A stretch of 64,000 nt of DNA. It comes from Octopus sinensis (taxonomy: Eukaryota). The stretch lies in the NCBI RefSeq assembly GCF_006345805.1, contig NC_043023.1, forward strand, positions 15,562,001 to 15,626,000. Reading direction: 5' to 3'. The notes beneath the pieces were generated by a model that worked only from the letters and a program-made list of their open reading frames with translations, had not been told where the DNA came from and ran no database searches. The number at the start of each line of letters is the position of its first letter. The stretch's first letter is position 1. Positions 2 through 56,155 of this stretch are shown here, piece after piece. The position numbers and the translations under genes are program-made.

Positions 2-485
<484 letters not shown>

Positions 486-2080: not shown

Positions 2081-2300
2081 ACTTTTAGACGCAGAAAATG
2101 ATTTTAGCTCAATAGAGGGCATAGGATTGGTTAAAATTCGAAAAATTAAACTACGTTAAAATTACAAATTACAATTTTCTCAAGAAAGCCAAAAGAAAAA
2201 GATGTTTTATTTTGACACATTCTACCAGTATACGAAGTTTAAAACTTTTTAGTTACCTAGAAATTATGTTAAAAAACTGTCGTTCAAAAGGAAAAGATCC
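2081..2300. mobile_element. Right half of a family A MITE
   Basis: Matches the right arm of 6263-6931 and ends in ggaaaagatcc (2296-2300). Confidence 0.75.
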
Positions 2301-3213
2301 GTGGTTTCTCTTTCGTACGCTCGTGTTGTTGTTGTTATAGTTGTCTGAGTGAGGAATGTTGTTGTTGCCATCAACACCGCTATTGTTTACATTAATTTGA
2401 AATTTGCCAGCAAAATCAAATAAAATGGCAATGTTCTATAAGTTGTACGAGCTTATATCCTTTGTATGAAAATAAAGAAGTTAAGTATGTTATGTGACTC
2501 CGGCGTAACCGTAACCGCCAAAAACGGGTGGTGTGGCTATTCGTTACCTTGGCCCAATTCACATTTTCAAATATTTATTATAGTTATAAACAAACATTAA
2601 CAGTTTACAACCTTAAATTCAGACAAAAATGAGTAAATACGAAGCGCACAACAACCGGATTGTTAGTTCGTTTCGTTGACTTTCCGTGTCGGCTTTTCTA
2701 TGTGTCTTCCAGTAATATTTCCCGCTCGTTCGAGTGTGTAATTAAAAATATTTCTTATAAAACAGCGACTAAATTATCATCAGAGGTATGTTGTAATACA
2801 TATTTTCTCTTTAGTAAAAACCTATGTATCTGGCTAATTGGAAAATCCAGACAGTATTGATAGTTTTAAATAATACTAGTCTGAAATCGATATTAATTCT
2901 ATTGTCCAGTAAAGCACCTGGTTTTTAATTTCAATTATTTTGGTAGATAATCCATTTGCTGGTTGTGTCCATTCAAAGCTGTTTGTTGTTTTATCACAGA
3001 TGTATCATTTGCTAAACATCTGTATTTGCTGTTTATTCTGTCAAAATGATACACGTTAATAATTTTGTCCATTTCAGCTTCTCAGAATAAATAATCTGCA
3101 ACATCATAAAACATCAATAGCTAACTGAAACATGTGGCCAGTGATAGCACTATGATAAAAAGCAGATACAGCCTTTTGTAGACAGAATCGGCAAGGGTCA
3201 TAAACTGGCGATG

Positions 3214-3556
3214 GGTACTACTCTAGAAGAGTGGTCCCGGTGTGCGCACTCGCGCTTGTTAGTCGTGACTAGTCGATCCTTACTTTGTGTTTTTGTTTTA
3301 TTTACTCAGTTTAAAAAAAAAAGGAAATTATTTACTAAAGAATATGAAAACTAAAAGAATATATCACACACATTTTATTTGATTTGTGTAAAAAAATCAT
3401 ATACATTGTTCTAAGAAATAATTTATTTACTTTCTTTAAAAAATTCTTTTATTTTATTCTGTAAAATCAACTCATTTGCATACGCGCAAGTCTTTGTAGG
3501 ATCGACTAATTACGACTAGCTAGCGCGTACCGGGTCCAGTCTTCGCTAGTAGTACC
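3214..3556. mobile_element. MITE with GGTAC..GTACC termini (~60-bp imperfect TIRs); copies at 44562-44903 and 47076-47419
   Basis: Left ggtactactctagaagagtggtcccggt vs reverse complement of right end ggtactactagcgaagactggacccggt; no TSD visible. Confidence 0.6.
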
Positions 3557-3585
3557 TGTTTTATTTACTTTATTTTAAAAAGAAA

Positions 3586-3743
3586 GGCGATCTTACGGTA
3601 TAAGTACCGGTGTACTTCCATAAGTACCGGATACATTTCAAAAAAGTGTTTTTTTATATGTGGGGGGGGGGGGGAGAAAAGTGTTTCTGTTATCTTCAGA
3701 AATGTAAACAAAGTCACGTGTGTACCTATACCGAAGGATCGCC
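3586..3743. mobile_element. Small MITE with GGCGATC..GATCGCC termini; related copies near 44390-44525, 47459-47943 and 62378-62690
   Basis: 17-bp TIR ggcgatcttacggtata / tataccgaaggatcgcc. Confidence 0.55.
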
Positions 3744-4660
3744 ATTCTGTCCTGGCTCTACTCTTCATACGTCAATTCACAGAAAACTTTCTCTAAATTA
3801 GTGACCACACCTTCAACATATGTGAGTGCAGTTTGTTGATCTGTTACAGAAGTTGTAACAATCATGAACATTACCTAATTTCATTAATAATAGATCTGCT
3901 CAGTCAAGGATAACCTAGGGTTAAACAGTAGTCACTTATCATATTATTGTCCAATATCCTATAGTTGAACCCTTTATTGTTTAAACCAGCCATATCAGGC
4001 CCAGATATTCTGCATGTTTTATATTCAAACTGGCGGTATCTGGCCTCTCACACCTAACCTACATTGACATTCTAGAAATAAACAATCACATCATTGAAAC
4101 CTCAAAGCCATAAGATAATGAATGATTAATTCAAAACAATTTGAGTGAAAAAGAATTACATTTAACAGAATAATCTGAACACTAAAGGGATAATGTTTTC
4201 CATAATATCTGAAGGAAGAGGAACTGAAGTCCGTGTATATGTAGACATTACACAAGGTTGTATCATATAATTTTAATAACAAAATAAATTTCAAAGACCA
4301 CACCCTTTTGTTACTAACCCGGCCAAAACCGGCTCTGGCTCTGTGGTAAAGTGTCTTGTTTTCATAAGTTTTGAATTAAAGTCCTCCACCAAACCTTAGT
4401 TACAATTTATGTTCCTAACACTAGTTGAATGATAACTAAGTTAGTTTACTAAGTTCTTTATTATATTTAAAATAATTGAAAGAAACACACTGAATCTCAA
4501 AAGAAATATGGTAACAAAAGGGTTACCATATTATAAATTACCATAAATAAATTTCAGAGACAAATTAAAGGATTATATCCACAGTTTATCATTATGAAGA
4601 TGTAGTTATATTTTTTTTATAGTTGAATCTCTGCTTTTTGAGTCTTTCCTATATCTTCTT

Positions 4661-4680
4661 CTGTTTCTGTGTCATTTCAG
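4661..4680 (+). promoter_or_regulatory. Putative 3' splice acceptor opening the ZNF coding exon (ctgtttctgtgtcatttcag)
   Basis: Pyrimidine tract plus TTTCAG; conserved ~330-370 nt upstream of the ATG in paralogues (27418, 48948; minus strand 15026, 37508, 43375, 61672). Confidence 0.55.
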
Positions 4681-5007
4681 GAGGTGAAATGTTAGTGATA
4701 CTTCATGAATATTGATCATCTAATGGAAGATGTTATAAATATTTGACATAACTCTTTTTATACGATTTGTCTATGGTGGAAAACTGTGAAATATTTCTTC
4801 TGAATTGATGGCAACATTTGTTTCCATCATTGCCTGTAATATTTGCTAAAGTCTTTCACATTCTGTTTGGAGCGGGAGATATCTGCAAAGGTGTTTGTAT
4901 CATCTTCAGATATTGATGAAGATCAGAACTTCTGGAAATATAAGCAATAGAAATATATAAAAAAGGAAGCAAAATTATATTTTGTGTTTGTATACTATAG
5001 AACAATA

Positions 5008-6229
5008 ATGAATCCTCAAGAGATGACAAAAGAAAGAGAAAAATTATCACATCAATGTGATATCTGTAAAATGACTTTTTCTAATCAGGGAAATCTCACT
5101 GTTCACAAATTCATTCATGCAGGAGGGAAACAATATCATTGTGATATTTGTGGTAAATCATTCTCTCATATCAGTAGCCTTACCTCTCACAAATACAGTC
5201 ATACAGGTGAGAAACCATATCAGTGTGATATTTGTGGTAAATCATTCACTCATAAGCATAGACTTACTTCTCACAAATCCATTCATACAGGAGAGAAACC
5301 ATATAAATGTGATATTTGTGGTAAATCATTCTCAGATAAAAGTAACCTTTCTTCTCACAAATACATTCATACAGGAGAGAAACCATATCAGTGTGATATT
5401 TGTGGTAAATCATTCACTCATAAGCATAGACTTACTTCTCACAAATCCATTCATACAGGAGAGAAACCATATGAATGTGATATTTGTGGTAAATCATTCT
5501 CTGATAAAAGTCACCTTTCTTCTCACAAATACATTCATACAGGAGAAAAACCTTATCAGTGTGATATTTGTGGTAAATCATTCTCTCAAAAGAGTGGCCT
5601 TATTTCTCACAAATCCATTCATACAGAAGAGAAACCATATGAATGTGATATTTGTGGTAAATCATTCTCCCATAAGCACAGCCTTACTTCTCACAAATCC
5701 ATTCATACAGGAGAGAAACCATATCAGTGTGATATTTGTGGTAAATCATTCTGCCATAAGCACAGCCTTACTTCTCACATATCCATTCATACAGGAGAAA
5801 AACTTTATCACTGTGATATTTGTGGTAAATCATTCTCTCAGAGAAGTAACCTTACTAGACACAAATCCACTCATACAGGAGAGAAACCTTATCACTGTGA
5901 TGTCTATGGAAAATCATTCTCTCAAAAAAATTCAACTTTCTTCCCACAAATCCATTCATACAGGAGAGAAACCTCATTAATGTGATGTCTGCGGAATGTC
6001 ATTCTCTCAAAGACGTTACCTTGATTCTCACAAATACATTCATACAGGAGAGAAACCATATCAATGTCGTATTTGTGGTAAATCATTCTCCCGTAAGCAT
6101 AGCCTTACTTATCACAAATCCAATCATACTGGAGAGAAACTGCATTTGTGTGATATTTGTGGTAAATCATTGTCTTGCTTGCGCTCTTTAACCTCTCATA
6201 AAAACATTCATACAGGAGAGAAACCATAG
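5008..6229 (+). pseudogene. C2H2 ZNF-1: 10 intact fingers, then a broken finger (Cys to Tyr), +1 frameshift (A7 5924-5930) and TAA (5978-5980); 3 further fingers to the shared TAG
   Basis: ORF MNPQEMTKEREKLSHQCDICK... with TGEKPY linkers. It could still encode a truncated 10-finger protein. Confidence 0.85.
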
Positions 6230-6262
6230 CACTGTAACATCTGCAGTAAATCATTCTAAGTC

Positions 6263-6931
6263 GGATCTTTTCCTCTTGAACGGCACTTTTCAACACAATT
6301 TCTAGTTAATTAAACACTTTTAAACTTTGTATACTGGTAGAATGTGTGAAAAGAAAACGTTTCTTTCTCTTGGCTTTCTTGAGACAATTGTAATTTGTAA
6401 GTTTAATGTAGTTTAATTTTTCGAATTTTAACCAATCCTATGCCCTCTATTGAGCTAAAATCATTTGCTGCGTCTAAAACTAAGACAGCATCCTGTCACT
6501 AACCCTAACCCTAAATTTTAGCCTTTCAGTTTGTTTGTTTTTTATTGTTACATGTGTGTCTAAAATTATTCGTTTTGTTTTTTAGTTGAGTTTTTTTCTT
6601 TTGTTTTAGCCTTTCATTTTTTTTTCTTAATTATTATCCTTAAATTAATTTAACAATTAAGAAAAAAAACCGAAAGGCTAAAATTTAGGGTTAGGGTTAG
6701 GGTGATGTTGTCTCAGTTTTAGACGCAGCAAATGATTTAGCTCAATAGAGGCCATTGATTGGTTAAAATTCGAAAAATTCAACTACGTTAAACTTACAAA
6801 TTGCAATTTTCTAAAGAAAGCCAAGAGAAAAAAATGTTTTATTTTGACACATTCTACCAGTATACGAAGTTTAAAAGTGTTTAATTAACTAGAAATTGTG
6901 TTGAAAACCGCCGTTCAAAAGAAAAAGATCA
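6263..6931. mobile_element. Family A fold-back MITE (~270-bp arms) starting 33 nt after the ZNF-1 stop; contains (TAACCC)n/(TTAGGG)n
   Basis: ggatcttttcctcttgaacggc...gccgttcaaaagaaaaagatca; arms complementary; flanks do not form a TSD. Confidence 0.85.
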
Positions 6932-7124
6932 GGTATTTCTCCTGCATCTGTCTTACCAGAAATATATAGCATCAGTGGTGCTTTTCCCTGGCATGAACCC
7001 AAACTGCATCTCATCTAAACTGACTCTCTCTCTAATTAGTTGATAATTATTTACTTTGTGTGAAAAAATTATTTACCTCGTTTAAAAAAAAAAAATTATT
7101 TGATATACAGCCTTTAAATACATA

Positions 7125-7637
7125 CCATAAATCCTCGAGTATAGTCCGCCCTTGAGCATAATACTCAGGGGAATTTTTAGGGGGCTGTACCTCTGAAAAA
7201 CTTAAACCTTGTGTATAATATGCACCCCTTCTCTAACATGAGTCAAGGAGGTCTATATAACATCCTTGGTTAGTAAAAATGTATACGGTAACGTCCTTTA
7301 TTATTATTGTATATATAACATAATGCAAACGTGTAGCTTTTTTGTGTATTTTGTTTGCAGAAAATAAAGAAATAACAGTAATAACGTTTAATAAATGTTG
7401 CTTACTGCAAGTTATGGATGATTCTTTTATGACTTCATTGCTTTCAGGCTTAGCTTAAGGTATTTTCACGCCCGACATCACAAATTGCGTCTGAATAAAC
7501 ATTGCCGGACAGCAAAGAGAGACTCGGACATTGCTTACAGAATATTTTTCATTTTTTACCTCGTCTATAATCCGCACCTGGGATTTTGACCTTTAAATTT
7601 GGGGGGAAAAATGCGGATTATACTCGAGGATGTACAG
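7125..7637. mobile_element. pogo/Tc1-mariner-type MITE with TA TSD; copies 34329-34838 and 51913-52574 (latter has an internal duplication)
   Basis: TA|ccataaatcctcgagtata ... tatactcgaggatgtacag|TA; termini resemble the CCGTA ends of the Passer element at 25 kb. Confidence 0.65.
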
Positions 7638-7950
7638 TACATGTTTTGCGCATGCGTGCATCTATTAATTTGCATACATGCACTCGCGCTAGGTAGTCGT
7701 AGGATCGACTAGTCACAACTAGCTAGCGCGCAGTGGGATCACTTTTCTTAAATAGTACCCGGCGTCGATAACCAGTCAAGTCGTGAATCACTCTGGTAAT
7801 TAATATATATATAACAATTATAGGTGGTTTTACATTTTCCACAATGATATTTACTACCAGGGTGCCACCAAGCTTATTGAATATGAGAGAAGGCTGTTTT
7901 TCCTAAGACATATTAACATGCAGCCATCTGTACTTTGTACAAGTTTGCGC

Positions 7951-8897
7951 TGATCTTTTCCTTTTGAATGGCATATGTCAACACAATTTCTAGTTAACTA
8001 AACACTTTTAAACATCGTATACTGGTAGAATGTGTTTATAAAACATCATTTTTTCTTGGCTTTATTGAGAAAGTTCTATAGTTTGTAACATATTTCCACT
8101 TTAAAATCAAGGATTTCGACAATTTTAACCAATGAAATATGCCTATTTGGAGTCAAAACATACCGTGCTGTATGAATATGTCCCTTGTTTAAGAAACAGA
8201 TTGGGTTTATTTACATTTGCAAAGAAAAAAAAATACCCTTCCCCCACCCCTAACCCTAAAATAGATTGAAATGCAAAGATCGATATTAGGGTTATAATTA
8301 TGGGTGACAATTTCATACAACACCACTACAGAAAATGGGATTTTTTTCTAGTGGTGTCAAATGAAAATGTCACCCATAATTATAACCCTAGTATCGATCT
8401 TTGCATTTCAATCTATTTTAGGGTTAGGGGTGGGGGAAGGGTATCTTTATCGTACCACTACTGCATAAATCTCTATGAGATATTTAGAAATGTACTGGAT
8501 CTTCTCGGTTTGAACAGCAGTTTTTCTAGCGGTGTCATATGAAATTGTCACCCATTATTATGACCCTAGTATCGATCCATTGCATTTCAATCTCTTTTAG
8601 ATTTAGGGGTGGGGGGAAGGGTATCTTTTTTTCTTCATAAATGTAAATAAACCCAATCTGTTTCTTAAACAAGGGACATATTCATATGGCACAGAATGAT
8701 TTCACCTCAATAGACGTCAATGATTGGTTGAAATTGCAGAAAAAAAACAACAAATATCTTACAAACCGTAGAATTTTCTCAATAAAGCCAAGAGAAGAAG
8801 ATGCTTTATAAACACATTCTACCAGTATACGAAGTTTAAAAGTGTTTAGTTACGTGCAAATTTTTTTTAAAAACTACTGTTCAAACTGAAAAGACCT
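7951..8897. mobile_element. Composite/nested family A and B MITEs; related at 33470-34007 and 52896-53410
   Basis: tgatcttttccttttgaa at 7951, a second terminus ggatcttctcggtttgaacagc at 8497, shared subterminal motif acacattctaccagtatacgaagtttaaaagtg. Confidence 0.7.
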
Positions 8898-9044
8898 ACA
8901 TACTCTATTTTTGATGGTGAAATTCCAATGAAGGATCCTTGGATTTAGGTTAGAAATTGGCTCTTTCTGTATTGGCAAGTAATTTTGAAATAAAACTGAA
9001 CAATGGTATACATATATACATACGTACGTACATACATGCAGTCT

Positions 9045-9058
9045 GTTGCTATAGCAAC
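9045..9058. promoter_or_regulatory. Perfect palindrome GTTGCTATAGCAAC matching an RFX X-box
   Basis: 14-bp palindrome, unchanged in the duplicated copies at 33308-33321 and 53484-53497. Confidence 0.35.
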
Positions 9059-9330
9059 GGAGCTAAGATACACAGAGTGAAGCCACTCGGGAAAGATTGA
9101 CTCTAAACTCTGCTGTGCATTCACACTAAGTGTTAAGATTCTAGCTCTCTTCTGCTGTTTGCAGCAATGCTTGGAAGGAAGGTGTGTAGCGTGTGATTGT
9201 CACATTGAGCATAATAGAAAGTTTAGCGGAGAATCTGCATCAGATTTTGCAAAACTCAGGGCAATACCTGCTCAGAGGCCCACACAAATTTTCATCATTC
9301 TCGACACAATCAAGGGAATCTTGTATAACT

Positions 9331-9530
9331 TATTTCTTTATTACCCACAAGGGGCTAAACACAGAGAGGACAAACAAGGACAGACGGCACGGGTTAAGTC
9401 CGTTATATCGACCCCGAAACGATGAAAGGCAAAGTCGACCTCGGTGGAATTTGAACTCAGAAGATCATGGCAGATGAAATACGGCTACGCATTTCGCCCA
9501 GCGTGCTAACGCTTCTGCCAGCTCACCGCC
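9331..9530 (-). mobile_element. SINE family 2 (ggcggtgagctggcag...gccccttgtgggtaataaagaaata) with TSD; orthologous copy ~53771-53959
   Basis: B-box-like gagttcaaattcc; TSD ttgtataact at 9321-9330 and 9531-9540. Confidence 0.85.
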
Positions 9531-10591
9531 TTGTATAACTAAAACCTGAGTGACCCCTGGCGGTCAGACAGGAAAGCAAAATGAAAATGGGATTTAAAGA
9601 GAGTAATCTCCCTCGACCTTCTTGAATATATTAGAAGCTTCCTATAAACTTCCAGGTGACATAGCAGTCAGGGACTTCTGGTTTATCCCTAATATAAAGC
9701 AGAACATTCTAATTTTGTGCCACCCTTGCGTTGACTCCTGACTCCTAGACATGCATTGACTCAGGTCATACACATACACACCCGCAAGTGCATGTGTTTG
9801 CCTTATTCTGCTTTGAGACGTGGTTGCAAAATATGTTCATCTGATGTTACAAGCTTTTCCTTCAATTAACCTTATATGTCAACGCATTACCTCTGGATCT
9901 TGCCTGAGTAGGGTTTCCTCTCCGAAGACCTTCCGCTGTGCAGCTCTCTTGAGAATTTCCTACCATTGTCTTATTTTAACATTTCATCAGTGACTGGGAA
10001 ATATATTTCCTTCACACTCCTTCTCTCACATGGTTACCATCTACTCAATGGCTCCATCGCATATTCACTAGATAACCACCATCGTTAGCATTTAATGAAC
10101 AAACTTATCCCTTCGTTTATCTCTCATCACTGTATCTTAGCATCTAACACCAAGTATTTTGTATATTAAATAATATCAACAAATTATATAACTTCAAAAC
10201 AAACATTTATTATAGATCAGTTTGGAGAAATGTGTAACTTTTATCATACATTGATCAAGTGTGAATTCTATGCTGCATCATCAATTGTATAGGCTCATAA
10301 GGGACACGTTTGGATAGGGTTGCCAGATTAGAAAATCATATATACGGGACACTTTTAAAATCTCTCTCTATATATATATTTATACATGCCTGCACACCCA
10401 ACATAATATATAAAAGCAGAGAGATAAGTTAAAAAGATAATGCAATTATTTTAATGAGTTATGAGGTCAAAATTATTTAATACAAGCTAAAGAAATAATA
10501 AATTCTATTAAAGTGAAATAATTTGAAAATATTTCTTTAATACAGACAACAGAGAAATAAGCAAACAATATCTTGTGTAATGTGTACATAT

Positions 10592-10966
10592 AGGCATAGT
10601 AGTGGCTGTGTGGAAAGTAGCTTGCTTACCAACCACATGGTCCCAGGTTCTGTCTCACCGTGTGGCACTTTGGACAAGTGTCTTCTACTATAGCCTCGGG
10701 CCGACCAAAGCCTTGTGAGTGGATTTGATAGACAGAAACTGAAAGAAGTCCATCGTATATATGTGTGTGTGTGTATATGTTTGTCCCCCAAACATCGCTT
10801 GACAATCGATGCTGGTGTGTTTACGTCCACCATAACTTAGCAGTTCAGCAAAAGTGACTGATAGAATAAGTACTTGGCTTACAAAGAATAAGTCCTGGGT
10901 CGATTTGCTCAACTAAAGGTGGTGCTCCAGCATGGCCACTGTCAAATGCCTGAAACATGTAAAATA
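10592..10966 (+). mobile_element. SINE family 1 (tRNA-derived head, central (TA/TG)n); orthologous copies 30901-31276 (-) and 55020-55396 (+)
   Basis: A-box-like tggctgtgtgg, B-box-like ggttctgtctc/ggttcagtccc, conserved body ...ggtgctccagcatggcc..gtcaaatg..gaaaca. Confidence 0.85.
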
Positions 10967-12023
10967 GATAGGTTCCCCTATTTTCTTTCATGTATCCATA
11001 TTTATTATTGAAATATCACTTCCAGTATCGAACTGAAGTTTAATATTTATTCCAATCATTTTTACGTGTACAAATTTTCTTATTTGGGAGTCGAATTTTG
11101 TTTCTGTTGAGAGCCCTCTAGGATCTTTAATGGTTGATCTTCAGAATTTAGTTCTGCAGTGTGAATTTCTGTATATTCAGTTGTTGTAAGGCCTTGTACC
11201 AAAAGAAGACACCTGAACATCTCAGGTGTAAATTCTCTGAGTTTAAAAATATGCACACATCCTGTCAATTGTTCCTGCGTATGTGATAAAATCACCATCC
11301 TCTTTTTTCATTATATTCCAAAACACCATCCAAGTGTTAGAGAAGTTTTATCACCGAATATGTTAGACAGTAATTCTATTGTTTCTTTAAAACAAATTTC
11401 ATTGAGTTTTTTTGGGTAATATGAAATTAAAGTAATGTTCATACTCAGATGGGGCTCATTTATGTCATAATAACCATACTTTTTCTGTGTCTGACCATGT
11501 CTTACAATCATCCTTAAAAATTACCTGCTGTAGTATAATGCAAGTTATACCGTCCTCTGGGTTATAACTGAATTCATCGAGTCCAAAACGTCGTCTGGCG
11601 AGAATGTACTTCCCTTATTTTTGGACTTCTTTGAATAAAGCTCCAATAATTGTTGTTGTTGCTGCCTTTGTCGTTGATTTTGCAACAGTTTTAAAGAAGC
11701 TAATTAGTCTTCCATGATTTAACAATTTTGTATCACAAAAATTTGTTAACTGACCTGCAAGAGCTTCGAAACTCTCATCGCCAGATGTTGTAACATAATT
11801 GTTCCGTACAACAAATAAGATAACCAGAAAATTATAACAACAATCTAATGAACTAACAAATCTTTTACGAACCAACATTCAATATTCCTTAGGAAGTAAA
11901 CCAAGCGACACCTTCCGACTTCACTTGACTCTGAACCGTAAACCCACTCAGATTGTAACTATTTATACTTTACTCGGACCAGTCTATCTCTCACAAGGGG
12001 ACATGGTAACTCTCATCACAACA
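10967..12023 (-). mobile_element. Ty3/Gypsy LTR retrotransposon 5' remnant (LTR 11786-12023, PBS, decayed gag, protease)
   Basis: LTR bounded by TGTTGT..ACAACA; decayed gag (..FTPEMFRCLLLVQGLT..) and protease KLQFDTGSD; inverted copy of 29844-30900. Confidence 0.8.
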
Positions 12024-14314: not shown

Positions 14315-14372
14315 ATTGTTCTATAGTATACAGACAGAAAATATATTTTCCCCTTCTTCTTTATATATATCT

Positions 14373-46015: not shown

Positions 46016-46046
46016 AGTAAATAATTTTCTTTGAGAGGCAATTTAG

Positions 46047-46209: not shown

Positions 46210-47558
46210 GAATGTCGTTGTTGCCACCAACACCGCTATTGTTTACATTAATTTCAAATTTGCCAGCAAAATCTCATAAAATGGCAATGTTCTATAAGTT
46301 GTACGAGTTTATATCCTTTGTATGAAAATAAAGAAGTTAAGTATGTTATGTGACTCCGCCGTAACCGTAACCGCCAAAAACGGGTGGTGTGGCTATTCGT
46401 TACCTTGGCCCAATTCACATTTTCAAAAACTTATTATAGTTATAAACAAACATTAACAGTTTACCACCTTAATTTCAGCATCAGACAAAAGTGAGTAAAT
46501 ACGAAGCGCACAACAACCGGAGTGTTAGTTCGTTTCGTTGACTTTCCGTGTCGGCTTTTCTATGTAACTTCCAGTAATTATTTCCCGCTCGTTCGAGTGT
46601 GTAATTAAAAATATTTCTTATAAAACAGCGACTAAATTATCATCAGAGGTAAGTTGTAATACATATTTTCTTTTTAGTAAAAGCCTATGTATCTGGCTAA
46701 TTGGAAAATCCAGACAGTATTGATAGTTTTAAATAATACTAGTCTGAAATCGATATTAATTCTATTGTCCAGTAAGCACCTGGTTTTTAATTTCAATTAT
46801 TTTGGTAGATAATCCATTTGCTGGTTGTGTCCATTCAAAGCTGTTTGTTGTTTTATCACAGATGTATCATTTGCTAAACATCTGTATTTGCAGTTTATTC
46901 TCTCAAAATGATACACGTTAATAATTCTGTCCATTTCAGCTTCTCAGAATAAATAATCTGCAACATCATAAAACATCAATAGCTAACTGAAACATGTGGC
47001 CAGTGATAGCACTATGATAAAAAGCAGATACAGCCTTTTGTAGACAGAATCGGCAAATGTCATAAACTGGCGATGGGTACTACTCTAGAAGAGTGGTCCC
47101 GGTGTGCGCACTCGCGCTTGTTAGTCGTGACTAGTAGATCCTTACTTTGTGTTTTTGTTTTATTTAATTAGTTTTAAAAAAAAAAAGAAATTATTTACTA
47201 AAGAATCTGAAAACTAAAAGAATATATCACACACATTTTATTTGATTTGTGTAAAAAAATCATATACATTGTTCTAAGAAATAATTTGTTTACTTTCTTT
47301 AAAAAATTCTTTTATTTTATTCTGTAAAATCAACTCATTTGCATACGCGCAAGTCGTTGTAGGATCGACTACTTACGACTAGCTAGCGCGTACCGGGTCC
47401 AGTCTTCGCTAGTAGTACATGTGTGTTTGTGTTTTATTTACTTTGTTTTAAAAAGAAAGGCGATCTTACGGTATAAGTACCGGTGTACTTCCGGAAGTAC
47501 TGGATACATTTCAAAAAAGTTTTTTTTTATAGTGGGGGGGGGGGGTTAGGGTTTCTGT

Positions 47559-47850
47559 AAATGCAAATATATGGGAAACTACCACCTGTGTCATCTCTTG
47601 TGAAAGGTAGGAGAGTCCAGTGTGCTGGACATTGTTGTAGAGCTGAAAAAGAGGTAATTTCTACTCTCCTCCTCTGGAAGCCATCTACTCGCAATACCAG
47701 AGGGCGCACACTCTCCTACCCTGATGTAATCTCCAGGGATACAGGCATCCAGCAACAGGACCTACGTCATGCCATGATGGACTGTGAAGTCTGGCGTAGC
47801 ATGGTAAATTCCATTGTCTCGACCACGGACGAACAATGATGGTGATGAGT
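47559..47850 (+). mobile_element. 5'-truncated LINE (RTE-like 3' end), copy-specific, 8-bp TSD
   Basis: ..RGRTLSYPDVISRDTGIQQQDLRHAMMDCEVWRSMVNSIVSTTDEQ*, tgatggtgatga tail; TSD gtttctgt 47551-47558 / 47851-47858; absent at 3670 and 44450. Confidence 0.75.
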
Positions 47851-49293
47851 GTTTCTGTTAGGGTTAGGGGTGGGAGAAAAGGGTTTCTGTTAGGGTTCAG
47901 AAATGTAAACAAAGTCACGTGTGTACCTATACCGAAGGATCGCCATTCTGTCCTGGCTCTACTCTTCATACGTCAATTCACAGAACACTTTCTCTAAATT
48001 AGTGACCACACCTTCAACATATGTGAGTGCAGTTTGTTTTTATTATTAATAAAGTTACGAGAAGAAAAGTCATGATGGGTTGGTTCACTAAATTCTAGTT
48101 TATGTTTGATCTGTTACAGAAGTTGTTACAATCATGAACATTACCTAATTTCATTAATAATAGATCTGCTCAGTCAGGGATAACCTAGGGTTAAACAGTA
48201 GTCACTTATCATATTATTGTCCAATATCCTATAGTTGAACCCTTTATTGTTTAAACCAGCCATATCAGGCCCAGATATTCTGCATGTTTTATATTCAAAC
48301 TGGCGGTATCTGGCCTCTCACACCTAACCTACATTGACATTCTAGAAATAAACAATCACATCATTGAAACCTCAAAGCTATAAGATAATGCATGATTAAT
48401 TCAAAACAATTTGAGTGAAAAAGAATTACATTTAACAGAATAATCTGAACACTAAAGGGATAATGTTTTACATAATATCTGAAGGAAGAGGAACTGAAGT
48501 CCGTGTATATGTAGACATTACACAAGGTAGTATCATATAATTTTAATAACAAAATAAATTTCAAAGACAACCCCATTTTGTTACTAACCCGGCCAAAACT
48601 GGCTCTAGCTCTGTGGTAAAATGTCTTGTTTTCATAAGTTTTGAATTAAAATCTTCCACCAAACCTTAGTTCCAATTTATGTTCCTAACACTAGTTGAAT
48701 GATAACTGAGTTAGTTTACTAAATTCTTTATTATATTTAAAATAATTGAAAGAAACACACTGAATCTCAAAAGAAATATGGTAACAAAAGGGTTACCATA
48801 TTATAAATTACCATAAATAAATTTCAAAGACAAATTAAAGGATAATATCCACAGTTTAACATTATGAAGATGTAGTTATATTCTTTTTAATAGTTGAATC
48901 TCTGCTTTTTAAGTCTTTCCTATATGTTCTGTTTCTGTGTCATTTCAGGAGGTGAAATGTTAGTGATACTTCATGAATATTGATCATCTAATGGAAGATG
49001 TTACAAATATTTGACATAACTCTGTTTATACGATTTGTCTATGGTGGAAAACTGTGAGATATTTCTTCTGAATTAATGGCAACATTTGTTTCCATCATTG
49101 CCTGGAATATTTGCTAAAGTATTTCACATTCTGTTTGGAGCGGGAGATATCTGCTGCAAAGGTGTTTGTATCATCTTCAGATATTGATGAAGATCGGAAC
49201 TGCTGGAAATATAAGCAATAGAAATATATAAAAAAGGAAGCAAAATTATATGTTGTGCTTGTATACTTTAGAACAATATTGAATCCTCACGAG

Positions 49294-51003
49294 ATGACAA
49301 AAGAAAGAGAAAAATTATCATACCAATGTGATATCTGTAAAAAGACTTTTTCTAGTAAGGGAAATCTCACTGTTCACAAATTCATTCATGCAGGTAGGAA
49401 GCCATATCACTGTGATGTCTGTGGTAAATCATTCTCTCAGAAAAGTAACCTTACCTCTCACAAATACAGTCATACAGGTGAGAAACCATATCACTGTGAT
49501 ATTTGTGGTAAATCATTCTCTGATAAAAGTCACCTTACTAGACACAAATCCACTCATACAGGAGAGAAACCATATCACTGTGACATCTGTGGTAAATCTT
49601 TTGCATTAAAATATAATTTAACTACTCACAAATTCATTCATACAGGTGAGAAACCATATCAGTGTGATATTTGTGGTAAAACATTCTCTCAAAAAATTCA
49701 CCTTACTAATCACAAATTCATTCATACAGGTGAGAAACCATATCACTGTGATATTTGTGGTAAATCATTCCCCTATAAGCATAGCCTTACTTATCACAAA
49801 GTCAGTCATACAGGGGAGAAACCACATCCCTGTTATATATGTGGTATATCATTCTCCCAGTTAGGTGACCTAACTAGACACAAATACAGTCATACAGGTG
49901 AGAAACCATATCAGTGTGATATTTGTGGTAAATCATTCTCTCATATCAGTAGCCTTACCTCTCACAAATCCATTCATACAGGAGAGAAACCTTATCACTG
50001 TGACATCTGTGGTAAATATTTTGCATTAAAATATAATTTAACTACTCACAAATTCATTCATACAGGTGAGAAACCATATGAATGTCGTATTTGTGGTAAA
50101 TCATTCTCCCATAAGCAGAGCCTTACCTATCACAAATACATTCATACAGGGGAGAAACCACATCAGTGTGAGATTTGTGGTATATCATTCTCCCAGTTAG
50201 GTGACTTAACTAAACACAAATACAGTCATACAGGAGAGAAACCATATCACTGTGATATTTGTGGTAAATCATTCTCCCATAAGAGTAGCCTTACTTATCA
50301 CAAATACATTCACACAGGTGAGAAACCATATCAGTGTCATATTTGTGGTAAATCATTCCCTCAAAAAAGTAACCTTAATTCTCACAAATCCATTCATACA
50401 GGTGAGAAACTATATCAGTGTGATATTTGTGGTAAATCATTCTCTCAAAAAATTCACCTTACTAATCACAAATTCATCCATACAGGTGAGAAACCATATC
50501 ACTGTGATATTTGTGGTAAATCATTCTCCTATAAGCATAGCCTTACTTATCACAAAGTCAGTCATACAGGGGAGAAACCACATCCCTGTGATATTTGTGG
50601 TATATCATTCTCCCAGTTAGGTGACTTAACTAGACACAAATTCATTCATACAGGAGAGAAACCATATCAATGTCGTATTTGTGGTAAATCATTCTCTCAA
50701 AAAAGTCACCTTGATTTTCACAAACACATTCATACAGGAGAGAAACCATATCAATGTCGTATTTGTGGTAAATCATTCTCTCAAAAAAGTCACCTTGATT
50801 TTCACAAACACATTCATACAGGAGAGAAACCATATCAATGTCGTATTTGTGGTAAATCATTCTCCCGGAAGCATAGCCTTACTTATCACAAATCCATTCA
50901 TACTGGAGAGAAACTATATGAGTGTGATATTTGTGGTAAATCATTGTCTTGCTTGCGCTCTTTAACCTCTCATAAAAACATTCATACAGGAGAGAAACCA
51001 TAG
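49294..51003 (+). CDS. C2H2 ZNF-6, intact 20-finger protein without effector domain (569 aa from ATG 49294)
   Basis: Uninterrupted ORF, 20 x 28-aa C-x2-C-x12-H-x3-H units with TGEKP linkers; the family's first ATG is mutated to TTG, so the second Met (MTKEREKL) is used. Confidence 0.9.
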   Translation: MTKEREKLSYQCDICKKTFSSKGNLTVHKFIHAGRKPYHCDVCGKSFSQKSNLTSHKYSHTGEKPYHCDICGKSFSDKSHLTRHKSTHTGEKPYHCDICGKSFALKYNLTTHKFIHTGEKPYQCDICGKTFSQKIHLTNHKFIHTGEKPYHCDICGKSFPYKHSLTYHKVSHTGEKPHPCYICGISFSQLGDLTRHKYSHTGEKPYQCDICGKSFSHISSLTSHKSIHTGEKPYHCDICGKYFALKYNLTTHKFIHTGEKPYECRICGKSFSHKQSLTYHKYIHTGEKPHQCEICGISFSQLGDLTKHKYSHTGEKPYHCDICGKSFSHKSSLTYHKYIHTGEKPYQCHICGKSFPQKSNLNSHKSIHTGEKLYQCDICGKSFSQKIHLTNHKFIHTGEKPYHCDICGKSFSYKHSLTYHKVSHTGEKPHPCDICGISFSQLGDLTRHKFIHTGEKPYQCRICGKSFSQKSHLDFHKHIHTGEKPYQCRICGKSFSQKSHLDFHKHIHTGEKPYQCRICGKSFSRKHSLTYHKSIHTGEKLYECDICGKSLSCLRSLTSHKNIHTGEKP

Positions 51004-51036
51004 CACTGTAATATCTGCAGTAAATTACACTAAGTC

Positions 51037-51717
51037 AGATCTTTTCCTTTTGAACGGCAGTTTTTAACAATATTTCTAGTTAACCAAACACTTTTAAACT
51101 TCGTATACTGGTAGAATGTATCAAAATAAACATTTTTTTCTTTTGGCTTTCTTGAGAAAATTGTAATTTGTAAGTTTAATGTAGTTTAATTTTTCGAATT
51201 TTAACCAATGCTATGCCTTCTATTGAGGTAAAATTATTTGCTGCGTCTAAAACTGAGGCAACATCCTGTCACTAACCCTAACCCTAAATTTGTGCCTTTC
51301 ATTTTTTTTTTTCTTAATTCTTAAATTAATTTAATCGTTTCGCGTTTGTCTAAAATTATTTATTTTGTTTTTGTTGGGTTTTTGCTTTCGTTTTAGCCTT
51401 TTGTTTTTTTTTTCGTAATTGTTATCCTTAAATTAATTTAACATTTGAGAAAAAAAAAAAAGGAAAGGCTAGAATTTAGGGTTAGGGTGATGTTGTCTCA
51501 GTTTTAGACGCAGCAAATGATTTTAGCTCATTAGAGGCCATTGATTGGTTAAAATTCTAAAAATTAAACTGCATTAAACTTACAAATTACAATTTTCTCA
51601 AGAAAGCCAAGAGAAAAAAATGTTTTATTTTGACACATTCTACCAGTAAACGAAGTTTTAAAGTGTTTAGTTAACTAGAAATTGTGTTGAAAACCGCCGT
51701 TCAAAAGAAAAAGATCA
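51037..51717. mobile_element. Family A fold-back MITE 33 nt after the ZNF-6 stop
   Basis: Homologue of 6263-6931. Confidence 0.85.
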
Positions 51718-54700
51718 GGTATTTCTCCTGCGTCTGTCTTACCAGAAATATATAGCATCAGTGGTGCTTTTCCCTGGCATGAACCCAAACTGCATCTCAT
51801 CTAAACTGACTCTCTCCCTAATTAGTTAATAATTATTTACTTTGTGTGAAAAAATTATTTACCTTGTTTTAAAATAAAAAAAATTATTTGATATACAGCC
51901 TTTAAATACATACCAAAATTCTTTGAGTGTAGTCCGCCCTTGAGTCTAATACTCAGGGTAATTTTTAGGGGGCTGTACCTCTGAAAAACCTAAACCTTGT
52001 GTATAATATGCACCCTTTCTCTAACCTGAGTCAAGGAGGTCTACATAACATCCTTGGTTTGTAAAAATGTATATGGTAACATCCTTTCTTATTATTGTAT
52101 ATATAACAATGCAAACGTGTAGCCTTTTTGTGTATTTTGTTTGCAGAAAATAAAGAAATAACAGTAAAACCTAAACCTTGTGTATAATACGCACCCCTTC
52201 TCTACCCTGAGTGAAGGAGGTCTGTATAACATCCTTTATTATTATTGTATATATAATATAATGCAAACGTGTAGCTTTTTTGTGCATTTTGTTTGCAGAA
52301 AATAAAGAAATAACAGCAATAATGTTTAATAAATGTTACTTACTGCAAGTCATGGTTGATTCTTTTATGACTTCATTACTTTCAGGCTTAGCTTAAGGTA
52401 TTTTCACACCCGACATCACAAAATGCGTCTGAATAAACATTGCCGGAGAGCAAAGAGAGACTTGGACATTGCTTAGAAAATATTTTCATTTTTAACCTCG
52501 TGTATAATCCGTACCTGGGATTTGACCTTTAAATGTTTGGGGAAAAAATGTGGATTATACTCAAGGATTTACAGTACGTGCTTTGCACATGTACGCATCT
52601 ATTAATTTGCATACGTGCACTCGCGCTAGGTAGTCGAAGGATTGACTAGTCACAACTACCTAGCGCGATGGTGTGCAGCGGGACCACTTTTCGTAAATAG
52701 TACTCAGCGCCTGTAACCAGTCAAGTCGTGGGTCACTCTGGTAATTAATATATATATAACAATTATAGGTGGTTTTACGTTTTCCACAATGATATGTACT
52801 ACCAGGGTGCCACCAATCTTATTGAATATGAGAAGGCTGTTTTTCCTGAGATGTATATTAACACGCAGATGTCTGTACTTCGTACAAGTTTGCGCTGATC
52901 TTTTCCTTTTGAATGGCAGATGTCAACACAATTTCTAGTTAACTAAACACTTTTAAACTTCGTATACTGGTAGAATGTGTTTATAAAACATCATTTTTAC
53001 AGAAAATGGGATTTTTTTCTAATGGTGTCAAATGAAAATGTCACCAATAATTATAACCCTAGTATCGATCTTTGCATTTCAATCTATTTTAGGGTTAGGT
53101 TTGGTTAGGGTTAGGGGTGGGGGAAGGGTATCTTTATTGTACCACTACTGCATAAATCTCTCAGATATTTAGAAATGTATTGGATCTTTTCGGTTTGAAC
53201 GGCAGTTTTTCTAGCGGTGTCATATGAAATGGTCACCCATTATTATGACCCTAGTATCAATCTATTGCATTTCAATCTCTTTTAGGGTTAGGGGTGGGAG
53301 AAGGGTATTTTTTTTCTTCACAAATGTAAATAAACCCAATCTGTTTCTTAAAAGAGGGACATGTTCATACGCCACAGAATGTTTTCACCTCAATAAATGT
53401 CATTGATTGCTTGAAATTGAAGAAATAAAACTGAACAATGGCATACATATATACATACGTACATACATACATACATGCGGACTGTTGCTATAGCAACGAA
53501 GCTAAGATACAGAGTGAAGCCACTTGGGAAAGATTGACTCTAAACTCTGCTGTGCTTTCACACTAAGTGTTAACATTTTAGCTCTCTTCTGCTGTTTGCA
53601 GCAAAGCTTGGAAGGAAGGTGTGTAGTGTGTGATTGTCAAATTGAGCATCATAGAGAAAGTTTAGCAGAGAATCTGCATCAGATTTTGCCAAAATCAGGG
53701 CAATACCTGCTCAGAGGCCCACACAAATTTTCATCATTCTTGACACAATCAAGGGAATCTTGCATAACTTATTTCTTTATAACCCACAAGGGGCTAAACA
53801 CCCAAAGGACCGACGCACGGATTAAGTCCGTTATATCGACCCCGAAAAGATGAAGAGCAAAGTCGACCTCGGCGGAATTTGAACTCAGAAGATTACGGCA
53901 GATGAAATACAGCTACGCATTTCGCCCAGCGTGCTAACATTTCTGCCAGCTCACCGCCTTGTATAACTAAAACCTGAGTGTCCCCTGGCGGTCAGACAGG
54001 AAACCAAAATGAAAATGAGATTTAAAGAGAGTAATCTCCCTCGACCTTCATAAATATTTTAGAAGCTTCCTATAAACTTCCAGATGACATAGCAGTCAGG
54101 GACTTCTGGCTTATCCCTAATATAAAGCGGAACATTCTAATTTTGTGCCACCCTTGCGTTGACTCCTGACTTCTAGACATGCATTGACTCAGGTCACACA
54201 CATACACACCCGCAAGTGCATGTGTTTGCCTTATTTTGCTTTGAGACGTGGTTGCAAAATATGTTCATCTGATGTTACAAGCTTTTCCTTCAATTAACCT
54301 TATATGTCAACGCATTACCTCTGGATCTTGCCTGAGTAGGGTTTCCTCTCCAAAGACCTTCCGCTGTTCAGCTCTCTTGAGAATTTCCTACCATTGTCTT
54401 ATTTTAACATTTCATCAGTGACTGGGAAATATATTTCCTTCACACTCCTTTTCTCACATGGTTACCATCTACTCAATGGCTCCATCGCATATTCACTAGA
54501 TAACCACAATCGTTAGCATTTAATGAACAAACTTATCCCTTCGTTTATCTCTCATCACTGTATCTTAGCATCTAACACCAAGTATTTTCTATATTAAATA
54601 ATATCAACAAATTATATAACTTCAAAACAAACATTTATTGTAGATCAGTTTGGAGAAATGTGTAACTTTTATCATACATTGATCAAGTGTGAATTCTATG

Positions 54701-56155
54701 CTGTATCATCAATTGTATAAGCTCATAAGGGACACGTTTGGATAGGGTTGCCAAATTAGAAAATCATATATATGGGACACTTTTAAAATCTCTCTCTATA
54801 TATATATTTATACATGCCTACACACCCAACATAATACATAAAAGCAGAGAGATAAGTTAAAAAGATAATGCAATTATTTTAATGGGTTATGAAGTCAAAA
54901 TTATTTAATACAAGCTAAAGAAATAATAAATTCTATTAAAGTGAAATAATTTGAAAATATTTCTTTAATACAGACAACAGAGAAATAAGCAAACAATATC
55001 TTGTGTAATGTGTACATATAGGCGTAGGAGTGGCTGTGTGGTAAGTAGCTTGCTTACGAACCACATGGTCCCAGGTTCAGTCTCAGTGTGTGGCACTTTG
55101 GACAAGTGTCTTCTACTATAGCCTCGGGCCGACCAAAGCCTTGTGAGTGGATTTGGTAGACAGAAACTGAAAGAAGTCCCTTGTATATATGTGTGTGTGT
55201 GTGTGTATATGTTTATCCCCCAAACATCGCTTGGCAATTGATGCTGGTGTGTTTACGTCCACCATAACTTAGCGGTTCAGCAAAAGTGACCGATAGAATA
55301 AGTACTAGGCTTACAAACAATAAGTCCTGGGTCTATTTCTCAAATAAAGGCGGTGCTCCAGCATGGCCACTGTCAAATGCCTGAAACATGTAAAATAGAT
55401 AGGTTTCCCTATTTTCTTCCATGTATCCATATTTATTATATGTGCAACAGTATAACTACCAAATTAAAAATATGTTCTGGTGTTGCTTTGTTAAATGAAT
55501 CCTTCGAGCTGATACTTCAGCCTGGTCGCAGTATAATTATACAGAATTTAAATGAAACACACATATACGCACACGTTTCTGTGTACTGAAACATGTGTTT
55601 GTGTATTTACGTATGTAGGTACTTCTCTAGACACGTACACGTCCATCCATCCATCTTTCCTTCCTACTTTCTCCCTTCCCTCATATTCCTGGTCAACTTT
55701 GGTATGGTCTCCCTAGCGCTAACAACGTTGCAGTGTGTATAAGGTGTTTGTCTCTTACTACCAACATCAGAGGGGGGCGCCGAATAACTGTAGGACAGGA
55801 AGAAATATGGAAAGGGAAAAGTTCTTCAGTTCTATATTTAAGAGGTGAGGAATTATTTACATTCTTCTTCTTATTATTATCCAGGTCACTGTCTGGAATC
55901 GAACACTTATCCGTCAAATGTAAATAATGTACATAATTCCTCATCTCTTAAATATAGAACTGAAGAACTTTTCCCTTTCCTTATGTACGTATTCAGATAA
56001 GTACGTACGTACATAAATACACAAGCACATGTTTCAGTACACAGAAACGTGTGCGTATATGTGTGTTTCATTTAAATTCTGTATAATTATACTGCGACCA
56101 GGCTGAAGTATCAGCTCGTAGGTTTCATTTAACGAAGCAACACCAGAACATATTT

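Follow-up and report, generated by a model that had tools for sequence, protein, structure and literature searches.

The window analysed here, a stretch of 64,000 nucleotides from the genome of Octopus sinensis, contains polydactyl C2H2 zinc-finger genes in a cluster of the birth-and-death type, where one unit (U) occurs three times, in direct (copy A), inverted (copy B) and again direct (copy C) orientation. This triplication is nested in an inverted duplication of greater extent, in which 20.1-45.4 kb pairs with 46.5-64.0 kb or more. The rearrangements of the locus fit a burst of template-switch or end-joining events. The positions of the features are collected in Table 1.

Table 1. Features of the zinc-finger locus, with positions in the 64-kb window.
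Feature	Position	Strand	Content and remarks
g0	1..560 (array 68-551)	+	last five fingers, gene starts left of window; frameshift and stop
Copy A (full unit U)	2194..15392	+	g1A, 6.4-kb intergenic stretch, convergent g2A and part of g2A intron; right edge (15392) sharp, left edge inside a TE X copy
g1A	exon-1 unit 2555-2913; finger-exon open frame 4951-5985, fingers to 6235	+	in copy A
g2A	fingers 14644-12568; exon-1 unit 16954-17545	-	finger exon in copy A, exon 1 in spacer S
Spacer S	15393..27043		between A and B
GC-rich block in S	17.4-19.3 kb
S-mid	20096..24347	+	inverted partner of 63303-55441, 97-98% substitution identity
Exon-1 unit in S	24341-24900	+
Pogo-like transposon in S	24964-26855
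Copy B, distal part	27044..35740	-	reverse complement of U 6226-15392; holds g2B
g2B	fingers 27804-29298	+	in distal part of copy B
B-only mosaic block	35741..41092		stitched pieces inside copy B
Block piece	35741-35880		reverse complement of 15626-15762, 92% identity
Block piece	36434-37060		intron-like repeats; 36816-37060 versus 61774-62020 96.8%
Block piece	37056-40138	-	5' half of a zinc-finger gene, cut in finger 1
Block piece	39011-39395		SINE-like element
Block piece	39926-40610		reverse complement of 63303-64000, 94%
TE X pieces at block	40319-41388
Copy B, proximal part	41093..45443	-	reverse complement of U 2667-6550; holds g1B and its exon-1 unit
g1B	42985-41423	-	520-codon open frame, 17 fingers; start and first finger destroyed
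g1B exon-1 unit	45197-45443	-	upstream 112 nt missing
B-C centre	45444..46103	+	385 nt unique sequence, remnant and TE X terminus
Zinc-finger remnant in centre	45828-46045	+	two fingers, contains stops
Inverted TE X terminus in centre	46047-46101		short
Copy C	46104..55439	+	U 2194-11008; holds g1C
g1C	49294-51003	+	569 aa, 20 C2H2 fingers, sole intact gene, no other domain
S'	55441..63303	-	holds g3 and its 3' flank; joined to end of C
g3	fingers 61259-60279; exon-1 unit 62753-63119	-	in-frame stop after finger 2
Window right end	63303..64000	-	inverted partner of 39926-40610 (94%); truncated TE X and g4 exon-1 unit
g4	exon-1 unit 63814-64000	+	further gene, leaves window

The copies were traced by self-BLAST and by a three-way MAFFT alignment of the window, and both agree with an earlier note on this sequence, according to which a unit at 2.3-11.0 kb recurs inverted at 31.0-35.7 plus 41.1-45.4 kb and direct at 46.2-55.4 kb; the direct-inverted-direct geometry is real. 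The homology between A and B is longer than first noted and reaches 15392/27044: the distal part of B is 95-97% identical to A up to 27044, with an abrupt fall beyond. In each repeat the span carrying zinc-finger genes measures about 9-13 kb. The end points of the copies differ (A, U 2194-15392; B, U 2667-15392; C, U 2194-11008), and U 2667-11008 occurs in three copies, the middle one inverted, while U 11008-15392 (in A and B) and U 2194-2667 (in A and C) occur in two. Copy B, which extends in total from 45443 to 27044, is split by a 5.35-kb block that is absent from A and C and is bordered by two copies of U 6226-6550. The arms of A and B lie 11.65 kb apart around a non-palindromic spacer, those of B and C 0.66-1.09 kb apart.

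The similarity of A, B and C is far above chance level and the three are equally divergent, with substitution identities outside the finger arrays of 0.959 (AB), 0.953 (AC) and 0.956 (BC) over 6,052 three-way columns. Private substitutions (A 129, B 110, C 150) form a star-like pattern, pair-shared indels favour no pairing (7/7/4), and the alignment of the three contains no transposon insertion or indel class common to just one pair. This comparison, confined to the three copies, is compatible with the equal divergence expected from a joint or quick-succession origin; gene conversion among the copies, or separate events near in time, could also yield it, and runs of private changes belonging to one copy suggest some mosaicism. 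A divergence of 4-5% indicates that the rearrangement events are old and overwritten. The earlier note had also listed insertions private to single copies. Its SINE at 31527 in B was found as a 346-bp SINE-like element (31528-31873), whose empty site is clean in A and C; for its SINE-in-SINE at 32.7 kb, B carries a private 153-bp SINE fragment (32744-32896); and at its LINE at 47559 there is indeed an unclassified 327-bp insert private to C (47545-47871), for which LINE identity could not be demonstrated.

The genes consist of a short non-coding exon 1, an intron of about 1-3 kb and a single large exon of fingers only, and their tandem 28-residue C2H2 fingers with TGEKP-type linkers mark them as polydactyl. 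An intact reading frame is present in one of the seven finger arrays: only g1C (Pfam zf-C2H2, 5.7e-93; zf-H2C2_2, 1.9e-157) keeps it from the conserved start, while frameshifts, stops or loss of the start have disrupted the rest. A domain search with g1C gave no match to KRAB, SCAN or BTB, and its frame opens about 10 residues before finger 1; membership in the vertebrate KRAB-ZNF family was rejected, as an N-terminal KRAB domain is missing. Finger arrays have diverged at several times the pace of their flanks, are reshuffled and differ in finger number between unit copies (13, 17, 20), a gain and loss which, judged from the sequences, looks like unequal exchange, but inside the arrays.

As to orientation, the six arrays singled out in the earlier note (at 5056, 12568, 27804, 41441, 49327 and 60357) do read + - + - + -, but the strict alternation that it claimed does not extend over the window, where three exceptions occur. 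The seventh array (68-551, +) directly precedes the + gene at 5056, so that g0 and g1A are head-to-tail neighbours and the alternation is broken; the two-finger remnant at 45828-46045 (+) likewise stands head-to-tail with g1C, and the truncated 5' half of a gene at 37056-40138 is on the - strand. The three tail-to-tail pairs exist among the alternating six, but the third does not repeat the unit: C ends at U 11008, and g3 (60.1-61.4 kb) shares only 69-74% identity with the second gene of the unit, whereas true copies reach about 95%. Nor is the pattern independent evidence; it is a geometric by-product of reverse-copying a convergent gene pair.

In the larger inverted duplication, when 40610 is joined to 20096 in silico, a single continuous match of 1,096 bp to the right arm results (95.2%) and the entire right arm becomes colinear with the left region; S-mid lacks 3.3 kb, the stretch that carries intron and finger exon of g3 in its partner S'. 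The B-only block is assembled from short pieces of nearby sequence in both orientations, and one finger exon occurs in two complementary halves which have the same breakpoint (shared TTTTTC) and lie 8.8 kb apart in opposite orientations. Similarly young duplicate pairs (S-mid/S', 97-98%; 39926-40610/64000-63303, 94%; 36816-37060/61774-62020, 96.8%) are accompanied by at least 10 further breakpoints in sequence of similar age, which makes one clean triplication too simple a description. Older patches of 70-83% identity, again in both orientations, indicate that rearrangement at the locus is recurrent.

All readable junctions are non-homologous, with 0-2 nt of homology. That between C and S' (55439/55441, joining U 11008 to inverted S 24347) is blunt with 1 nt inserted and microhomology of at most 2 nt, although its place in the primary event is not certain and it could reflect a later deletion; S' and TE X meet at 63303 with a 1-nt overlap, and the deletion in S-mid (20493/20508) contains a 14-nt filler templated from both flanks. 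Blunt ends, 1-2-nt insertions, microhomology and templated insertions have been described for the junctions of inverted triplications (PMC11293582), and comparison at the sequence level supports a match between the readable junctions here and types known from template-switch rearrangements; breakage followed by end joining explains them equally. Their non-homologous nature argues against unequal crossover between homologous genes. Tandem duplication by NAHR between paralogous genes was rejected on account of the inverted middle copy and the 0-2 nt of homology. The hairpin-forming TE X, which makes up about 12% of the window, lies at or near several boundaries (left ends of A and C at 2194/46104; B-only block edges at 35406-35702 and 41026-41388; end of S' at 63299). 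Its arms (6264-6553/6648-6930) and the inverted exon-1 units (70% identity) are candidate inverted repeats, but no copy boundary falls suitably inside either, and within the window we found no pre-existing pair of inverted repeats to which a junction could be attributed.

What the sequence shows directly is the arrangement of the copies, their equal divergence, the sequences at the junctions, the decay of the genes and the additional duplicated pieces; the short time span, the replicative nature and the order of the events are inferred. A 13-kb unit with a convergent (tail-to-tail) gene pair would have been copied within a short span to give A in forward and B in reversed orientation and C forward again, though truncated, and the same burst would have produced the larger inverted duplication and the 10 or more additional breakpoints, in one or a few complex events of template switching at microhomologies, in the course of replication or of break repair (FoSTeS/MMBIR/ODIRA class). 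Erosion would have followed, through deletions, transposon insertions and the relocation of an inverted fragment; the + - + - + - order would be the automatic outcome of reversing a convergent pair, and most gene copies would afterwards have decayed, leaving one intact, while finger arrays were reshuffled much faster than flanks. We regard this burst of template-switch copying with later erosion as the most economical account and give it an even chance of being right. Against it speak the differing copy end points, the wide non-palindromic spacer between A and B and the unrelated finger remnant between B and C; junctions of the blunt or filler kind are, moreover, just as typical of double-strand-break end joining. 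The narrower reading that one germline multi-template-switch replication accident (chromoanasynthesis- or ODIRA-like), since fixed, yielded A, B and C together with S-mid/S', the relocated 5' half of a gene and the short stitched fragments, with TE X and T-rich CTTTTTC as switch points, appears doubtful.

Several independent breakage and end-joining rearrangements (NHEJ or theta-mediated) within a short period offer a possible, if tentative, alternative: an inverted duplication for A/B, a second for the 20-45 versus 46-64 kb pair, and later a 6.5-kb deletion in C, the 3.3-kb deletion in S-mid and the excision and inverted reinsertion of the gene 5' half. Such a stepwise history would suit the colinearity of C plus S' with the reverse complement of S-mid to B, which is complete except for a 6.5-kb gap whose blunt 1-nt junction resembles a simple deletion, as well as the differing end points, the templated filler typical of alternative end joining and the recurrent rearrangement recorded in the older patches. 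Copying of C from B after A/B, however, predicts a BC identity clearly above that of AB, where 0.956 versus 0.959 was found, and neither an insertion nor an indel class sets one pair apart. Direct tandem duplication, by unequal crossover or dispersed-repeat recombination, with subsequent inversion of the middle or an outer copy via inverted TE X, seems improbable, although TE X copies mark or adjoin several boundaries, the split gene halves point to one or more inversion-type events, and g0 and g1A are head-to-tail. The TE X pieces at the left end of C (1-104) and before g4 (94-384) are moreover complementary with an 8-nt overlap, the expected leftover of inverting 46104-63303. This complementarity may be coincidence, because the TE X terminal repeat naturally ends at position ~100 and several other copies too are cut short there; the half at 46104-46209 shares only 89.6% identity with the block's complete TE X, compared with about 94-95% for the other half, and 3-4 of about 12 boundaries near an element that fills about 12% of the window is a weak enrichment. 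The readable junctions also lack extended homology, and un-inverting B yields neither a regular tandem period nor matching flanks. That a single locus was assembled two or three times, once flipped, we consider scarcely credible. False duplications in inverted orientation are known from long-read assemblies, and some array frameshifts could be consensus errors; yet each copy carries its own clean transposon insertions, the substitution divergence is 4-5% over 6 kb of aligned non-coding sequence, finger numbers and array order differ, and so do flanks and end points. The earlier note had rightly held that the copies are not mere duplicated reads.

Among known systems, ODIRA inverted triplications, described for yeast SUL1 and proposed for human inverted CNVs (PMC4689423, PMC10766186), share the direct-inverted-direct order and the seemingly equal copy ages. 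Their junctions, however, consist of 5-6-nt inverted repeats 40-80 nt apart, with adjacent copies forming near-perfect palindromes with common end points (PMC10766186); with arms 11.65 and 0.66-1.09 kb apart and unequal ends, both features are missing at this locus. The unequal arms and kb-sized spacers rather resemble the 'secondary rearrangement' products of 5-10% of yeast events, and since secondary erosion can push inverted arms 1-35 kb apart (PMC10766186), original ODIRA junctions could be hidden. DUP-TRP/INV-DUP rearrangements (human MECP2, PLP1 and others; PMC11293582) likewise have a triplicated segment with inverted middle and duplicated flanks, and their junction 2 shows microhomology, is blunt or has a small or templated insertion, comparable to the 1-nt insertion and templated filler here. 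They differ in having a mediating inverted low-copy-repeat pair, which is not demonstrable here, and only two breakpoints in a de novo variant, in contrast to the many at this old (4-5% diverged) locus, fixed in the assembly, with unrelated sequence including a finger remnant between B and C. The earlier note's appeal to both systems is borne out in copy order and segment counts, but not in ODIRA junctions and common ends. The palindromes of ampliconic gene families on mammalian sex chromosomes likewise have inverted arms, measuring kb to tens of kb, on which gene copies face each other across a spacer in head-to-head or tail-to-tail order, whereas the arms here are 4-5% diverged, bear no sign of arm-to-arm homogenisation and hold mostly decaying genes. 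ODIRA also calls for a replication origin within the amplified segment, and metazoan origins are, to our knowledge, not recognisable from sequence.

The growth of large C2H2 zinc-finger families is usually put down to tandem duplication. With vertebrate KRAB-ZNF and cephalopod C2H2 clusters (PMC12513265, PMC9795677) the locus has in common dense polydactyl genes, TGEKP linkers, reshuffled arrays, many pseudogenes and interspersed transposons; unlike KRAB-ZNF clusters it lacks KRAB, SCAN or other effector domains, and unlike clusters grown by in-situ tandem duplication its young copies are related by inversion and non-homologous junctions. Cephalopod C2H2 expansions have been ascribed to tandem duplication, their orientation not being analysed there (PMC12513265, PMC9795677). 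The interpretation in the earlier note, replication-based inverted amplification instead of unequal crossover, is partly supported: the junctions disfavour crossover, but hallmarks specific to ODIRA and DUP-TRP/INV-DUP were not found. Its extension to a rule for the family gains no support from one 64-kb window, which itself has head-to-tail neighbours and cannot show how a whole gene family expands.

What is described here is a single locus from a single assembly, and in fast-evolving gene clusters inverted segmental duplications come as no surprise. The locus nevertheless provides a concrete case of one intact copy among decaying ones, with arrays diverging several-fold faster than flanks. 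If it is true that a single accident created it, it would be a natural, evolutionarily retained inverted triplication creating zinc-finger genes in an invertebrate. Should young cluster paralogues often prove to be related by non-homologous inversion, complex replication or repair rearrangements would be an important source of transcription-factor genes, and gene orientation in zinc-finger clusters would record mechanism, not function.

The direct-inverted-direct repeat announced in the earlier note is borne out by self-BLAST and a three-way alignment, from which the copies of the repeated ZNF-bearing unit (U, expressed in the coordinates of copy A) were defined. The two halves of the inverted copy B are colinear and enclose a 5.35-kb block found in B only (35741-41092), and A and B are 95-97% identical as far as 15392/27044, where identity collapses within a few bases. 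BLAST identities between the copies (87-97%) lie below their true similarity because indels are counted; by substitutions, identity is 0.959 for A-B, 0.953 for A-C and 0.956 for B-C (6,052 three-way columns, arrays left out). Private changes number 129 in A, 110 in B and 150 in C, indels shared between pairs split 7/7/4, and no transposon insertion is common to a pair. These figures indicate that the copies are related as a star, and the other duplicated pieces are of similar age. Among the private insertions listed previously, a clean SINE-like one of 346 nt (31528-31873) and a SINE fragment of 153 nt (32744-32896), both in B, are real, whereas the 327-nt insert in C (47545-47871), which had been read as a LINE, is not classifiable as such. 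The view that the copies are not duplicates created by the assembly likewise stands: a divergence of 4-5%, unlike finger numbers and unlike flanks, besides the private insertions, leave an assembly or haplotype artefact with a negligible probability, and we therefore exclude it.

Features of the window (g0 to g3, finger-array genes; TE X, a MITE-like element)
Feature	Position	Orientation	Remarks
Copy A of U	2194-15392	direct	self-BLAST, three-way alignment
Copy B of U, part 1	45443->41093	inverted	U 2667-6550
Copy B of U, part 2	35740->27044	inverted	U 6226-15392
Copy C of U	46104-55439	direct	U 2194-11008
g0 array	68-551	+	six-frame scan
g1A array	5056-6211	+	six-frame scan
g2A array	12568-14554	-	six-frame scan
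g2B array	27804-29298	+	six-frame scan
g1B array	41441-42916	-	six-frame scan
g1C array	49327-50985	+	six-frame scan
g3 array	60357-61175	-	six-frame scan
Exon-1 units	2555-2913, 16954-17545, 20280-20491, 24341-24900, 39761-40138, 45197-45443, 46411-46775, 62753-63119, 63814-64000		
TE X	7952-8448; ~18 other sites, e.g. 1555-1896, 6264-6930, 20913-21699, 40319-41388, 46047-46210, 63299-63593		MITE-like, hairpin-forming; ~18 copies in window
SINE-like element			~290-346 nt; ~10 copies in window
Second SINE-like family			interspersed repeat in window
Reverse-transcriptase fragments			interspersed in window
Pogo/Tigger-like DNA transposon	24964-26855		35-nt terminal inverted repeats

A six-frame scan of the whole window (64 kb, G+C 36%, without gaps) detected seven C2H2 finger arrays. 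Their orientations do not keep to the strict + - + - + - order claimed for them: g0 (+) stands head-to-tail before g1A (+), and the order is further broken by a two-finger remnant with stops between B and C (45828-46045, +) and by the 5' half of a further ZNF gene within the B-only block (- strand, 37056-40138), in which an exon-1 unit (39761-40138) and an intron are followed by the beginning of an exon, reading ...MTKEREKLSH*CDICIKTFS and cut within finger 1 at 37056. Nor is the supposed third tail-to-tail pair a copy of the unit, as C stops at U 11008, 1.5 kb before g2, and g3 shares no more than 69-74% identity with g2A and g2B. Since C falls short of g2, g3 is unlike g2 and extra pieces are present, the alternation is one reversal of a convergent pair plus an unrelated neighbour gene, i.e. 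about two events and not six independent observations.

An intact frame from the conserved MTKEREKLS start is found in g1C only; its translation has 20 canonical fingers with TGEKP linkers, and a Pfam search of it returned zinc-finger families only, with KRAB, SCAN and BTB domains absent. g1A is frameshifted after finger 10, g1B retains a 520-codon open frame without the start and first finger, and in g3 finger 2 is followed by a stop. Both g2A and g2B are frameshifted and share the same in-frame stops in the last two fingers (12630-12714, 29065-29236), which are therefore older than the duplication. Some of the array frameshifts could be due to consensus errors. The 5' end of the g2A finger exon is duplicated internally, with first-finger motifs at 14644 and 14266. 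g1A, g1B and g1C possess 13, 17 and 20 fingers (4951-6235, 41423-42985 and 49294-51003), of which the last is identical (100%) in all three, while the inner ones are 85-95% identical without one-to-one order, and multi-finger duplications have occurred inside the arrays (of 5 and 9 fingers in g1C). Compared with flanks of 95-96% identity, the arrays have diverged far faster, which is the expected signature of rapid remodelling after duplication.

Located 1.5-2.9 kb 5' of each array, and in the orientation of the gene, is a conserved exon-1 unit of ~360 nt without an open frame. It occurs nine times in the window, its 3' end is CAGAGGTAAGT with a GT donor, and it probably represents the promoter and a non-coding first exon (5'UTR). 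These units form head-to-head pairs, spaced 0.7-1.2 kb apart, at g1B/g1C and g3/g4 (g4 being a further + gene that leaves the window on the right), which suggests candidate bidirectional promoter regions. Among the interspersed repeats, TE X has terminal inverted repeats of ~100 nt and a near-perfect palindromic module of ~220 nt (8229-8448). The pogo/Tigger-like transposon, situated within a SINE-like copy in the g2B intron, looks young; its two ORFs encode HTH_Tnp_Tc5 (25458-25985) and DDE_1 (25973-26674), separated by one frameshift. Rfam yielded 0 RNA families and ARAGORN 0 tRNAs in the window, and a tRNA origin of the SINE is therefore only putative. The two SINE sequences, together with the polydactyl genes devoid of effector domains, look octopus-like, and protein homology searches with the ZNF, the pogo transposase and a reverse-transcriptase fragment yielded only distant or unnamed relatives. 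The A/B spacer includes a GC-rich block (17400-19300, 0.42) with an ORF (18414-18791) that carries a CCHC zinc-knuckle-like motif, CYKCGLRGHIRAYC, has no Pfam match and is possibly a degraded retroelement gag.

The triplication is part of a larger rearranged structure. A portion of the A/B spacer (S-mid, 20096-24347) has an inverted partner, S' (63303-55441), of 97-98% identity; the pair is segmental and not a single transposon because it is composed of several different repeats and unique sequence. S-mid is devoid of 3.3 kb present in S' (g3 intron and finger exon), and S' adjoins C directly at 55439/55441. The terminal stretch, 63303-64000, is an inverted copy of 39926-40610 in the B-only block (94%). 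Joining 40610 to 20096 in silico produces a single unbroken match of 1,096 nt (95.2%) across the join and renders the right part of the window (46.5-64.0 kb) colinear in reverse with the left (20.1-45.4 kb). C, S' and the start of g4 therefore mirror the stretch from S-mid to B with the block fragment. They differ in a gap of 6.5 kb, from U 11008 to S 24347, to which the whole g2 copy is lost, in the g3 body (3.3 kb) and in the fragment that was relocated. Short pieces copied from the vicinity, some direct and some inverted, are also found in the B-only block: 35741-35880 corresponds to 15626-15762 in reverse complement (92%), and 36816-37060 matches 61774-62020 (96.8%). The g2A intron harbours, at 16194-16730 and in opposite orientation, the exon-1 end and intron start of another ZNF gene with 72-82% identity to other copies, an older rearrangement patch, which shows that inverted fragments accumulated here repeatedly.

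Extended homology is absent from every readable junction. From C to S' (U 11008 to inverted S 24347) the sequence runs ...TTTATTAT + A + TGTGCAACAG..., with 1 base inserted and a possible microhomology of <=2 nt, and at 63303, between S' and TE X, the overlap is 1 nt. The 3.3-kb deletion in S-mid (20493-20508, versus 62906-59629) contains a 14-nt filler, TGGGGAATATTCAT, from copies of both flanks, as is characteristic of template switching or of alternative end joining. A and B end sharply at 15392/27044, and so does B at 45443. In the split finger exon, the 5' half inside copy B ends ...GACTTTTTC (37056) and the remnant between B and C starts TTTTTCTCTAATAAG (45828). The breaks fall at one and the same place in finger 1, with 6 nt (TTTTTC) shared, and the two halves lie 8.8 kb from each other and point in opposite directions. 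If a 2-kb exon were broken at random, such a coincidence would have a chance of ~0.6%, so that a rearrangement of the inversion or three-break type is implied. Undoing a single inversion of 37056-45827 rejoins the gene at the cost of splitting copy B, and a three-break event or two inversions would therefore be needed. Simple insertion of B into an intron of a resident gene, with its first fingers surviving at 45828, was rejected: in the remnant the conserved 5' portion of the finger exon is missing, and none of the family introns matches 45444-45827. The TE X halves at the left end of C and before g4 are also complementary (8-nt overlap), which is weaker evidence for inversion because the break is the natural end of the terminal repeat and the halves differ in identity to the complete copy (89.6% versus ~94-95%); an inversion of 46104-63303 that restores a complete TE X was accordingly downgraded.

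As the readable junctions are without extended homology, unequal crossover between paralogous genes or repeats was not the main process for the young copies. In this respect the earlier note was right, but the replicative inverted amplification of the family that it proposed instead is not established. We give roughly even chances to a burst of complex non-homologous rearrangement, probably replicative, in which one or a few complex template-switching events would have led to A, B, C and the other pieces. The star-like relationship of the U copies and the similar age of the other duplicated pieces fit such events, and template-switching junctions are reported to be blunt or to show microhomology of 1-9 nt, insertions of 1-2 nt or templated insertions (PMC11293582). 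The same junction and divergence data also fit a rapid stepwise series of break-and-join (end joining) events, which we regard as possible though rather unlikely. Tandem duplication combined with repeat-mediated inversion is improbable. TE X lies at or near 3-4 of ~12 boundaries versus a window coverage of 12%, a weak enrichment that makes it a candidate only; neither the periods nor the flanks agree with three direct tandem copies of which only B was inverted afterwards. Finally, a simple palindrome, in which C derives from B, would make B and C the most similar pair, which they are not (0.956 versus 0.959 for A-B).

The locus works like DUP-TRP/INV-DUP or like an eroded inverted triplication, the products of which can be worn down until the arms are unequal and the spacers kb-sized (PMC10766186). 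It agrees with DUP-TRP/INV-DUP only in copy number, orientation and junction 2, and none of the junctions could be linked to an inverted repeat pair of the kind that DUP-TRP/INV-DUP calls for. The common end points that define ODIRA, and its junctions at short inverted repeats spaced 40-80 nt from each other, are absent here. One window does not sustain an extension of the proposal to the entire family; it contains genes that follow each other head-to-tail, and its older patches run in either orientation. Studies of cephalopod C2H2 genes describe tandem duplication and do not treat orientation (PMC12513265, PMC9795677); that young paralogues arise in inverted and non-homologous fashion would, should the octopus attribution hold, be a new detail for the cephalopod C2H2 family.
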